DNA of 64,000 nt from positions 186,001-250,000 of the IMG/VR virus record IMGVR_UViG_3300046787_000408, one strand, 5' to 3'. How positions within the stretch are numbered: position 1 is the first letter of the stretch; every line of letters starts with the position of its first letter. Made by a program: the position numbers and the translations under genes. Shown piece after piece: positions 122 through 6,520 of this stretch. Under the pieces are notes generated by a model. That model ran no database searches. It saw only the letters and a program-made list of their open reading frames with translations, and was not told where the DNA came from.

Positions 122-352
122 ATGAAAAAAGATTTAAACTGGTATCTAAAGTGGATCGGAACTGTGATCCTGATTGTGGGCACGGCTGTCAACAGCATGG
201 GATTTTATCCCGAAGGCCCAATAATTCTAGCCCTGGGCGGGGTAATTTGGTTGGTGGTTAGCATACGTTGGCGCGAAGCCAGTTTGATTGTGACTAATGC
301 CGTAATGTTGTCCACAGGACTTGCAGGTCTTGCTTGGCACTATTTTAAGTAA
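122..352 (+). CDS. small membrane protein
   Basis: 76 aa, about three hydrophobic segments, directly after promoter. Confidence 0.75.
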   Translation: MKKDLNWYLKWIGTVILIVGTAVNSMGFYPEGPIILALGGVIWLVVSIRWREASLIVTNAVMLSTGLAGLAWHYFK

Positions 353-372
353 AAAGTACTAGTTTTTTCTGG

Positions 373-401
373 TTGACCAAAATTTGCCTTTTTGCTATAA
401 T
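373..401 (+). promoter_or_regulatory. sigma70-type early promoter within a repeated promoter module
   Basis: TTGACC-17-TATAAT; preceded by AAAAAGTACTA, followed by SD CAGGAG. Confidence 0.9.
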
Positions 402-432
402 ATACACATACAGCAACAAACAGGAGTAATTC

Positions 433-3435: not shown

Positions 3436-3848
3436 CTGGTGCTCAAGGAAGTGCTATCAGTGGCGGCACTAGTCCCTGGACTATAAGTGCAGGACCATAT
3501 ATTTCTAGTATTGATACCAGCAATGTTATGTGGGCATCAACTCCCAACACTGTATGGACTACCAACACAACTGCGGACTGGTCAATTGGCAGTGCTACTC
3601 CCAGTGCCACGCTAGAACTAAAAGGCGACAATGCCGATGTTGTAGTCAATGGCGAAAGCCTGATGCAGACTTTGCAGGTGCTAAAAGAGCGACTAAACTG
3701 GTTGCAACCCAATCCTGACATGGAATCAGAATGGGACGAACTGCGTGAACTAGGCGAACGATATCGTGAACTAGAAAAACAATGCCAGGAAAAATCTCAG
3801 GTCTGGAATACATTGAAAAAAATGCCTGACCCTTTAGGAAAAAAATGA
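3390..3848 (+). CDS. hypothetical protein
   Basis: Ser/Thr-rich N-half, coiled-coil C-terminus. Confidence 0.6.
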   Translation: MDPTETNNTIDTISITGAQGSAISGGTSPWTISAGPYISSIDTSNVMWASTPNTVWTTNTTADWSIGSATPSATLELKGDNADVVVNGESLMQTLQVLKERLNWLQPNPDMESEWDELRELGERYRELEKQCQEKSQVWNTLKKMPDPLGKK

Positions 3849-4672
3849 CATCCAAACAACGAATAAATCACATTGTTAAATGGCTAAAGGCCTATGCCAA
3901 GAGTGCCAATATCTCCACTTTTGTAGTGGGTATTTCAGGCGGTATTGACTCCAGCGTGGTCAGTGCCTTGTGCGCTCGAACTGGACTCAAGACCATTGTG
4001 GTACAGATGCCCATACGCCAGAACAAGAAACTAGACAATCGCAGCTCAATGCAGGCCACTTGGTTGCTGGAACACCACAAGGAAACAGTCACACACATGA
4101 GCGTGGACTTGACTCCTGTGTTTACAGCATTTGAAAAGAAGGTAGAACCCTTGTGCGGTGCTGAAGAATACAACCACGAAACATATTTGTTGGCTAGTGC
4201 TAACTCACGTGCTCGTTTGCGCATGATGACCTTGTATCAAATTGCACAATGTCACAACGGCCTGGTAGTAGGTACAGGCAACAAAGTGGAAGACTTTGGT
4301 GTGGGCTTCTTTACCAAGTATGGGGATGGTGGTGTGGATATCAGCCCTATTGGCGATTGCCTCAAGACAGAAGTTTGGGACATGGGCAGAGAATTTGGAC
4401 TCCCACAAGAGATCATTGATGCGCCGCCAACCGATGGACTTTGGGCTGATGATCGCACCGACGAAGATCAGTTGGGTATGACATACCCTGAACTTGAGCG
4501 AGCTATGGACAACGATCGCCTGGATCGTGAGTGTGTGTATCAAACTTTGACTATCCCGATGAACAAGGATGAAAAAGCACAACTCAAGAAGTATCGTGAA
4601 ATCCGTCGGCGCAACTTGCACAAAATGACACCCATTCCAGTGTGTGTTTTTCGCAACACTCAGGTTGGCTAA
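3845..4672 (+). CDS. nadE: NH3-dependent NAD+ synthetase
   Basis: VVGISGGIDS PP-loop, NSRARLRM, VVGTGNKVE, GFFTKYGDGGVDISPIGD, PTDGLW..TDEDQLG. Confidence 0.95.
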   Translation: MTSKQRINHIVKWLKAYAKSANISTFVVGISGGIDSSVVSALCARTGLKTIVVQMPIRQNKKLDNRSSMQATWLLEHHKETVTHMSVDLTPVFTAFEKKVEPLCGAEEYNHETYLLASANSRARLRMMTLYQIAQCHNGLVVGTGNKVEDFGVGFFTKYGDGGVDISPIGDCLKTEVWDMGREFGLPQEIIDAPPTDGLWADDRTDEDQLGMTYPELERAMDNDRLDRECVYQTLTIPMNKDEKAQLKKYREIRRRNLHKMTPIPVCVFRNTQVG

Positions 4673-4764
4673 TATCTAAAATTCGTGTATAATACACTTG
4701 TGTTCAACAACGCAGGGTATTATGCTTAAAACACAAGATTATTTTGCCCCCGGGCTAAGTAAAA

Positions 4765-4980
4765 GCGCTGGTAACACTGCCAGCAATCACAACAAGTTGG
4801 CCTTGCCAGCTTTGTCCATTAGAGATCCTCGGCAGATCTCTTCGTTGACAACTAGAATTGGACGGTGCTTTGCACTGTCCCAGACGAGTATGCCAAAGAG
4901 GCCCGAGGTCTTTCAGCTTTCTTTACTCACTTTTGTCAACGGCGTCACCATAGGCGCAGCCGTGTGATCTTGGATCACCT
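4765..4980 (+). ncRNA. candidate structured RNA/leader upstream of cell-wall hydrolase
   Basis: At least six stems incl. 9-bp CGTTGACAA/TTGTCAACG; loop-loop complement CCTCGG/CCGAGG. Confidence 0.55.
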
Positions 4981-4995
4981 TGAAAGGAGAAAAAT

Positions 4996-5544
4996 ATGGA
5001 ACGAGTTATCAAACTCACTTTGAGTATAGTAGGACTTCTGGTACTGATTACTTTGGTACAAGCAGTTACACAATACAAATTTCTAAAACTCACGGACTTT
5101 GTAAGTAATCGTCCCACAGTTACAGCCGCAGAGCGCCAGCGACAACTGGATTGCTTGGCTATCAACATTTACCGCGAAGCCGGGCATGAACCGTTTGAAG
5201 GCAAGGTAGGAGTAGCACAGGTCACGTTAAATCGTTCTGAGCACCCGGACTTTCCCAAAGACATTTGTGCTGTGGTGTACCAAAAGAACAAGATCATGGA
5301 ACGAGTAGTATGCCAGTTCTCATGGTACTGTGATTCAGCACACCGTGCTAGAGCCATCAATAAACCAGCTTACGATGAAAGTATGGAAGTGGCCAAAAAG
5401 GTCCTGCTTGAAGGATTTAGACTTCCTAGTCTAGAACCAGCCCTGTATTACCATGCTGATTATGTAAACCCACAGTGGCGCCTGGATCGCATTACCAAGA
5501 TTGGTGCCCATATCTTTTATAAACCACGTGAACGGAACATCTAA
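4996..5544 (+). CDS. SleB/Hydrolase_2 cell-wall hydrolase
   Basis: N-terminal TM; CLAINIYREA.GEPFEGKVGVAQVTLNR, CQFSWYC, ALYYHADYVNPQW, IGAHIFY. Confidence 0.9.
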   Translation: MERVIKLTLSIVGLLVLITLVQAVTQYKFLKLTDFVSNRPTVTAAERQRQLDCLAINIYREAGHEPFEGKVGVAQVTLNRSEHPDFPKDICAVVYQKNKIMERVVCQFSWYCDSAHRARAINKPAYDESMEVAKKVLLEGFRLPSLEPALYYHADYVNPQWRLDRITKIGAHIFYKPRERNI

Positions 5545-5545
5545 C

Positions 5546-5857
5546 ATGAACTACAATCAATTTGATATCGAAACATTCAAAGAACGAGCACAACAGATCT
5601 TTAGCAAAGTCAGCACTGAAACAGTAGGTTGGCTGGCTGTAGTGGTAATGCATGCTGCCACCATTCCCAGTTTGCTGGCTGTAATGAACGGTCTCACCGA
5701 CGTGATGTTGCCAGTTGACATGGTGCTGTTGGTGTGGTCTGCTCTGGTTCTGTTGTTTGTGAAAGCGGCTATCCAGCGTGATTTGCTGAACATGATCACT
5801 ATTGGCCTGGGATTCTTTGTGCAAGCGGCACTGATGGCCTTGATCTTTTTTAAGTAA
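5546..5857 (+). CDS. membrane protein (about 3 TM)
   Basis: Hydrophobic 103 aa directly after the hydrolase. Confidence 0.7.
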   Translation: MNYNQFDIETFKERAQQIFSKVSTETVGWLAVVVMHAATIPSLLAVMNGLTDVMLPVDMVLLVWSALVLLFVKAAIQRDLLNMITIGLGFFVQAALMALIFFK

Positions 5858-5868
5858 AAAGTACTACA

Positions 5869-5897
5869 TTGACCAATAATTCCAGATCTGCTATAAT
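5869..5897 (+). promoter_or_regulatory. sigma70-type promoter with AAAAAGTACTA upstream box
   Basis: TTGACC-17-TATAAT-ATACACATG. Confidence 0.85.
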
Positions 5898-5903
5898 ATA
5901 CAC

Positions 5904-6128
5904 ATGTTTAAAGCAAATCGATCCTATGTAACACTGCGCCCGGGGCACGAGGACTTTTCGTTCAGCCCCAATGGCATCACTGTTGTGCCCCGTGCCGCAA
6001 TTGAAATCAGTCAACGATGCCCAGAAAATTATCGTAGTCTGATTGCAGAATGCCTCAATCAAGGTTGGATCAAAGTTGTTGCCAACATGCGCGAAACTGA
6101 ATACACCATGGAGTTACTGAAAAAATGA
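5904..6128 (+). CDS. hypothetical protein
   Basis: 74 aa. Confidence 0.7.
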   Translation: MFKANRSYVTLRPGHEDFSFSPNGITVVPRAAIEISQRCPENYRSLIAECLNQGWIKVVANMRETEYTMELLKK

Positions 6129-6520
6129 GCATGCATTTACATCACCCCAGTCTCAGCATGAGCGGCAAGCGCAAAGGCAAGGTCAAGTTTCGCAACGCTG
6201 CCGAGGCTGCTCGTGCCCGCGAGCTTGACGCTAGCTGGAAAGAACTGTTGAAGTCACAAGGTATTCAAGCAGAAGAAAAGCGCCGTGCTCGTGCCATGAA
6301 GGCTGAGCCCTTGCAATACAAGTTGACAGCACCTGTGGGCCGCGAGACTGCTCACATTGCCAGTCGCGACACAGGACATTCTGGTGCTGTGCGTACCAAG
6401 GACATTCCACAGTACACAGGCACAAAAATTCTGGGTATTGGTACCATGCACAAGAGCAACGCTGTGCCAGTGTTCAGCGACCAAGAAGCCCACGACATTG
6501 CAACCATGCGCCGCGGATGA
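6125..6520 (+). CDS. hypothetical basic protein (GIGTMHKSNAVPVF motif)
   Basis: 131 aa, overlapping start/stop. Confidence 0.75.
   Translation: MSMHLHHPSLSMSGKRKGKVKFRNAAEAARARELDASWKELLKSQGIQAEEKRRARAMKAEPLQYKLTAPVGRETAHIASRDTGHSGAVRTKDIPQYTGTKILGIGTMHKSNAVPVFSDQEAHDIATMRRG

Follow-up and report, generated by a model that had tools for sequence, protein, structure and literature searches.

A conserved, intricately folded RNA is encoded in the roughly 320 nucleotides (nt) in front of the cell-wall hydrolase gene of a giant freshwater phage, and it is probably a new switch-like control on when the phage makes its predicted lysis enzyme. The RNA is shared by dozens of uncultured phages and matches no catalogued RNA family. 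We analysed a 64,000-nt stretch (hereafter, the window), positions 186001–250000 of the 299,983-nt IMG/VR virus record IMGVR_UViG_3300046787_000408, which is estimated to be 81% complete. Sequencing runs that hold this stretch are mostly freshwater, lake or drinking-water metagenomes. The leader with its promoter, the hydrolase gene and the gene that overlaps it are on the + strand, and paired stems of the core are designated ‘P’.

Genomic setting of the leader

The RNA lies in a 323-nt gap between two genes. Upstream is a phage-borne NH3-dependent NAD synthetase gene (nadE, 3845–4672, Pfam NAD_synthase), whose nearest DNA matches are in cyanophages and Pelagibacter phage HTVC008M. Downstream is a gene for a SleB-type cell-wall hydrolase (4996–5544, Pfam Hydrolase_2, PF07486, E = 1.1e-23), which also matches phrog_938 (endolysin), has relatives annotated as endolysin and begins with an N-terminal hydrophobic segment, making it a likely endolysin. 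It is followed by an overlapping 118-aa protein with three hydrophobic segments (5501–5857), which follows the hydrolase gene in L061 as well (L061 is a related locus described below). This protein has no Pfam or PHROG match; its role as a possible holin, and the designation of the genes as a lysis cassette, are inferred.

A sigma-70-type promoter, TTGGCT-17-TATAAT (4665–4693, 10 of 12 consensus matches), opens the gap, and relatives have TTGACA-17/18-TATAAT at the same place. Its −10 box sits in a perfect 6-1-6 palindrome (GTGTAT A ATACAC, 4685–4697) that is also complementary to 4719–4727, and which could be an operator or simply part of an RNA stem if transcripts start further upstream. Similar −10 contexts stand at the other two promoter-like sites of the window (346–420 and 5851–5900), where a repeated intergenic unit, TAAGTAAAAAGTACTA, is followed by TTGACC-17-TATAAT and ATATACA; these are probably the standard host-polymerase promoters of the phage. 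A scan of the window for tRNA and tmRNA genes found none, whereas related phage contigs encode a permuted tmRNA that scores as the betaproteobacterial type (L059:219–631, 156 bits; L061:725–1169, 114 bits), a hint about the host group.

Predicted fold of the leader

A first-pass annotation had described a set of stems and a potential kissing loop at 4765–4980, and this observation is confirmed, as every element was found where it had been placed. The stems are AAGTTGGC/GCCAGCTT (4794–4801/4805–4812), AGAGATC/GATCTCT (4821–4827/4835–4841), CGTTGACAA/TTGTCAACG (4843–4851/4933–4941), GGACGGTGC/GCACTGTCC (4860–4868/4872–4880), AAAGA/TCTTT (4895–4899/4909–4913) and GTGATC/GATCAC (4964–4969/4973–4978), the last followed by AAGGAG at 4984–4989 and the ATG at 4996. 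CCTCGG (4827–4832) is exactly complementary to CCGAGG (4903–4908), and the TAAGTA motif is at 4756–4761.

The minimum-free-energy fold of 4765–4980 reproduces most of these stems, although it closes the AAAGA/TCTTT hairpin more tightly, as a 7-bp stem with a 3-nt loop. Its energy of −78.4 kcal/mol compares with −60.1 ± 4.4 kcal/mol for 200 shuffles, none of which was as good (z = −4.15); for 4700–5000, z is −2.73, and for the L061 leader, z is −4.77. The reverse strand folds about as well (z = −2.49), so that energy alone does not give the strand.

The 5′ module (4700–4820) holds a TATTATG box (about 4719–4726), a stem of 4739–4744 with 4757–4762 that encloses GCC/GGC and whose 3′ strand is the TAAGTA motif, hairpins at 4766–4785 and 4794–4812, and a single-stranded TTGTCCA at 4811–4817. 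It is followed by hairpin Pa (4821–4841) and by a three-way-junction core (4843–4941) closed by P1 (4843–4851 with 4933–4941), which contains P2 (4860–4880), P3 (4886–4890 with 4924–4928) and P4 (4895–4899 with 4909–4913, loop 4900–4908). The final 54 nt (4942–4995) form a platform comprising hairpin A (4942–4957), a linker, hairpin B (4964–4978) and the Shine–Dalgarno sequence AAGGAG (4984–4989), which is essentially unpaired in the predicted folds.

A family of related leaders

To look for relatives, we fetched 80 hydrolase loci. A blastn search of the leader against them found four close relatives (hydrolase 90–93% identical, leader DNA 85–91% identical) that keep the whole leader, together with a 42-nt match in L061, a locus whose hydrolase is 60% identical and which shares the same core motifs. 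The five-sequence consensus fold of close relatives shows compensatory or G–U changes in hairpins 4766–4785, 4794–4812 and 4860–4880, and an invariant centre. A full-length model built from the five close sequences found only those sequences, and a search with the 14-mer GAGTATGCCAAAGA alone was swamped by chance hits. Pattern scans built from the shared motifs, by contrast, recovered further members from viral contigs and metagenome contigs, giving at least 48 distinct cores after filtering. An exact-pattern scan of 185,579 bacterial and archaeal species genomes found none. Because the patterns fixed TTGACAA, ATGCCAARGA and GTCAAYG, and the filter fixed TCGG, the invariance of those letters is partly by construction; CCGAGG was not required in the metagenome scan, and every listed row that carried the family’s GTATGCC or AAATGCC motif also had TCGG.

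The family fold, with pair counts taken on the 48 sequences, consists of hairpin Pa (a 6-bp stem with a 9-nt loop of consensus YYUCGG followed by 3 nt), one U as a spacer, P1, which closes the three-way junction, P2 (a variable hairpin of 20–60 nt), P3 (GAGU/ACUC and variants) and P4 (a 3–5-bp stem with a 9–11-nt loop), with invariant junction and loop nucleotides. Covariation supports three helices: Pa is paired in 99.7% of cells of the alignment with compensatory changes in 4 of 6 pairs, P1 in 99.5% with one pair running G–C/G–U/A–U, and P2 in 86% with compensatory changes in all 7 pairs. P3 and P4 recur in constrained folds of 20 diverse members, for example as GAAGU/ACUUC and GAGUAU/AUACUC. 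Over the whole structure 95.8% of cells are paired, against 85.5% in shuffles and at most 47% when partners are slid. The many G–U pairs would be A–C mismatches on the other strand and place the RNA on the + strand. In the 5′ part, TATTATG and CTAAGTA-like boxes recur in distant members.

The position of the RNA relative to the hydrolase gene is constant while neighbouring genes vary. In all 46 members with enough downstream DNA, an open reading frame (ORF) with a Shine–Dalgarno sequence starts after P1, at 51–57 nt in 45 of them and at 108 nt in L061, and all 44 ORFs long enough to compare match the window’s hydrolase at 31–93% identity. Outside P2 and the variable 3′ side of the P3–P4 loop, the core stays 66–88% identical to the window where the protein falls to 31–65%, although part of this comes from how members were found. 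The upstream gene is nadE in the window but a 127-aa gene in L061, whose homologue, a 131-aa protein (phrog_27048, unknown function), lies downstream in the window at 6125–6520. This homologue is apparently also directly upstream of the leader in many loci of the second leader type described below, so the locus has been rearranged around the leader–hydrolase unit. The element occurs once in the 300-kb genome.

Contigs from two metatranscriptomic libraries, from relatives about 90–95% identical to the window over those pieces, cover 4664–4809, 4777–5022 (core through the start codon) and 4940–5183. This fits a leader–hydrolase transcript, although these are assembled Logan contigs that may include DNA and from which no ends can be read, and one starts upstream of the predicted start site.

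About 40 of the 80 hydrolase loci carry a different conserved leader of 270 nt (type B; L009:2718–3006, L028:2731–3006 and 29 more loci in our alignment), with clear covariation in three hairpins. It shares with the window’s type (type A) the GTGTATAATAC promoter context, a TATATTAT box, a CTAAG..GTAG box and a hairpin just before GAAAGGAG. Type B has no Rfam match, and a model of the type A core gave no credible hit at its hydrolase leaders, so the two types are not shown to share a core. As a differently built leader occupies the same position in sister phages, the control point itself seems to be under selection.

Candidate loop–loop contacts

The proposed kissing loop would pair CCUCGG in the Pa loop (4827–4832) with CCGAGG in the P4 loop (4903–4908). 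For one pair of 9-nt loops, a 6-bp Watson–Crick match has a chance of 0.005 (random loops of leader composition) to 0.026 (shuffles of these loops); with about six loops in the leader, the match alone is not significant, and its weight comes from conservation in relatives. The pairing is kept in 96.9% of cells, but its two outer positions only switch between C and U opposite an unchanging G, with no compensatory change. Five variants (L300, L329 and L352–L354) have G at the second loop position together with altered P4 loops, which leaves only the UCGG/CCGA centre. In members with one C fewer (the L212 and L227 groups), the tight local hairpin that the energy model prefers in the window is not what the unconstrained fold finds, and by inspection it would leave a 2-nt loop, which favours an open P4 loop. 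We consider the contact plausible and somewhat more likely than not, but unproven.

The tight form of the P4 hairpin, followed by a U-rich run, was flagged as terminator-like (4897–4913) and would compete with the loop–loop contact. By our reading of the sequences it recurs in the L262 group, but the same hairpin or a U-rich tail is missing in the L212 and L200 groups, so this is not a family feature. A second candidate contact involves an upstream hairpin loop (UUYGUCCAA), about 29 nt before Pa, and a GGACR in the long apical loop of P2. It is seen in L300, L340, L277 and the L200 group; the two elements are present together or absent together, and the pair varies as U–A, U–G and C–G. In the window, GUCC (4813–4816) and GGAC (4860–4863) exist, but P2 is short and close relatives do not keep the upstream copy.

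Variable 3′ platforms

In place of the plain hairpin B of the window’s subgroup, 20 other members (L324:9251–9320, L300:1181–1250 and 18 more) have an H-type pseudoknot directly upstream of the Shine–Dalgarno sequence. Stem 1 is 100% paired with C–G/G–C swaps, stem 2 is 90% paired with all five pairs compensatory, and a UCC just upstream can pair with the GGA of the Shine–Dalgarno sequence in 88% of cells. In L061, the platform is instead an 11-bp bulged hairpin followed by six U, then a different hairpin and Shine–Dalgarno sequence, all after a 12/12 consensus promoter. A simple terminator scan did not call this hairpin, and its identification as a terminator is our interpretation of the fold. 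Interchangeable 3′ ends behind one conserved core are the usual signature of riboswitch classes. However, we found no competing, mutually exclusive helices that couple core and platform, and a test for an anti-Shine–Dalgarno segment between P4 and P1 gave nothing better than shuffles (mean z = +0.56).

Function of the leader

Our analysis bears out part of the first-pass interpretation, which had proposed a riboswitch-like regulator of a lytic enzyme or an independent non-coding RNA, with TAAGTA as a late-type motif. A structured + strand RNA placed as a leader of the hydrolase gene is supported. TAAGTA as a late promoter is not: the motif is not enriched in the window (4 CTAAGTA against 6.2 expected; 11 TAAGTAWW against 6.9 expected), two of the sites are stop-codon contexts of an intergenic repeat, and in the five-sequence consensus fold it forms the 3′ strand of a stem.

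We favour, with moderate confidence, the explanation that the region is the 5′ leader of the endolysin mRNA and acts in cis as a riboswitch-like control element. In anatomy the RNA is riboswitch-like, with a conserved, covarying aptamer-like fold and a constant position in the 5′ leader of the gene. In this view, transcription would start at the sigma-70-type promoter, so that the message can be made as soon as host polymerase sees the DNA, and the roughly 300-nt leader would fold into the 5′ module, Pa and the three-way junction, with the Pa loop probably docking on the P4 loop. Folding of this compact core, stabilized by a small molecule or by a phage or host factor yet to be identified, would decide whether ribosomes can load on the hydrolase start; in the L061 lineage the decision would instead be whether transcription passes a terminator. 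Either way, synthesis of a secreted wall hydrolase would be held back until the right time. The structure, its conservation, its strand, its fixed linkage to the gene and the absence of coding potential are shown by our data, whereas the loop–loop contact, the regulatory outcome, and the existence and binding of a ligand are inferred. On sequence evidence, which cannot decide between a riboswitch and other cis control, a cis-acting regulatory leader is likely, and a ligand-sensing riboswitch in the strict sense is possible but less likely than not: we identified no ligand and no gene set that hints at one, and the RNA is tied to one gene family in uncultured phages only.

The same leader might alternatively be the binding site of a phage or host protein (a translational repressor or activator, or an RNase), or a constitutive element that sets mRNA stability or translation rate. 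Conserved single-stranded blocks and complex tertiary modules fit protein recognition as well as ligand binding, the RNA is restricted to one gene in one group of phages, and no switching helices were found. However, the modular 3′ ends and optional peripheral modules are typical of riboswitch classes, and no candidate RNA-binding protein gene travels with the RNA, and the flanking genes differ; we regard this reading as unlikely, though not negligible. An independent non-coding RNA gene, such as a phage sRNA or structural RNA, is less likely still. The RNA is large and ornate and has its own promoter, and in L061 alone the core is followed by the terminator-like hairpin, but there is no terminator between core and start codon in the window, the spacing to the start codon is fixed in 45 of 46 members, the Shine–Dalgarno sequence lies within the conserved 3′ module, the RNA is never found away from a hydrolase gene, and an RNA-library contig bridges the core and the hydrolase start. 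A small protein gene, which had been named beforehand as a refuting alternative, or a DNA-level element (operator, origin or recombination site) is very unlikely: although the 89-codon ORF at 4698–4967 is open in the window and the −10 palindrome could be an operator, the ORF has stops or frameshifts in all four close relatives, variable columns fall evenly on its codon positions (23:21:19), it has no Pfam match, the shared motifs are read in different frames in L061, and the helices are kept through G–U pairs that only work in the + strand RNA.

Lysis timing in phages is usually explained by holins and transcription programmes, and an ornate, deeply conserved RNA in front of the endolysin gene points to an extra post-transcriptional layer of control. 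A more speculative possibility, which we consider doubtful but not excluded, is a phage-encoded riboswitch of a new class that reads a small molecule of the infected cell (an energy, nucleotide-pool, cell-wall-precursor or immune-signalling metabolite) to time release of a secreted endolysin, a metabolite-gated lysis clock in giant freshwater phages. If the RNA binds a ligand, it would be a riboswitch class known so far only from phage contigs and would show what signal these phages read before lysing. It also offers RNA structural biology a compact fold of about 125 nt with two candidate loop–loop contacts.

Comparison with known systems

No Rfam 15 family, including ydaO, lysM, M23, c-di-GMP, preQ1, glutamine, GOLLD and ROOL, matches the RNA: covariance model searches gave no hit at gathering scores over the whole window, no hit at E ≤ 10 on 4500–5200, and nothing on the element in 22 related loci at E ≤ 1 or E ≤ 5. 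No GenBank phage matches the DNA, and the closest hydrolase there is at most 41% identical, so none of those cultured phages carries it. Full-text literature searches found no description of it.

The nearest concept is the set of orphan riboswitch candidates upstream of cell-wall-degrading enzyme genes, the lysM-TM7, lysM-Actino, lysM-Prevotella and M23 motifs (PMC5737381), together with the ydaO c-di-AMP riboswitch. These too are conserved structured RNAs in the 5′ leaders of wall hydrolase genes that are taken to be cis-regulatory, and for the lysM and M23 motifs the ligand is likewise unknown. The RNA described here shows no sequence or structure match to them, is found in phages rather than bacteria, is larger and has a different architecture. 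In the phage T4 lysozyme (gene e) leader, early transcripts reportedly hide the ribosome-binding site in a hairpin (McPheeters et al. 1986), providing a precedent for a phage lysis enzyme whose message can be made early but whose translation is governed by leader RNA structure. In the window, however, the Shine–Dalgarno sequence is not sequestered in the predicted folds, the leader is ten times more complex and no internal late promoter could be shown. Finally, riboswitch aptamers organized by loop–loop contacts (purine L2–L3, lysine L2–L3, cobalamin L5–L13, and the guanidine-II and -IV kissing hairpins) likewise have a junction or hairpin pair locked by a short G+C-rich loop–loop helix and followed by an expression platform, with peripheral modules that vary between members. 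There is no homology to these aptamers, and the candidate contact here, which lacks compensatory changes, joins a hairpin outside P1 to a hairpin inside the junction.
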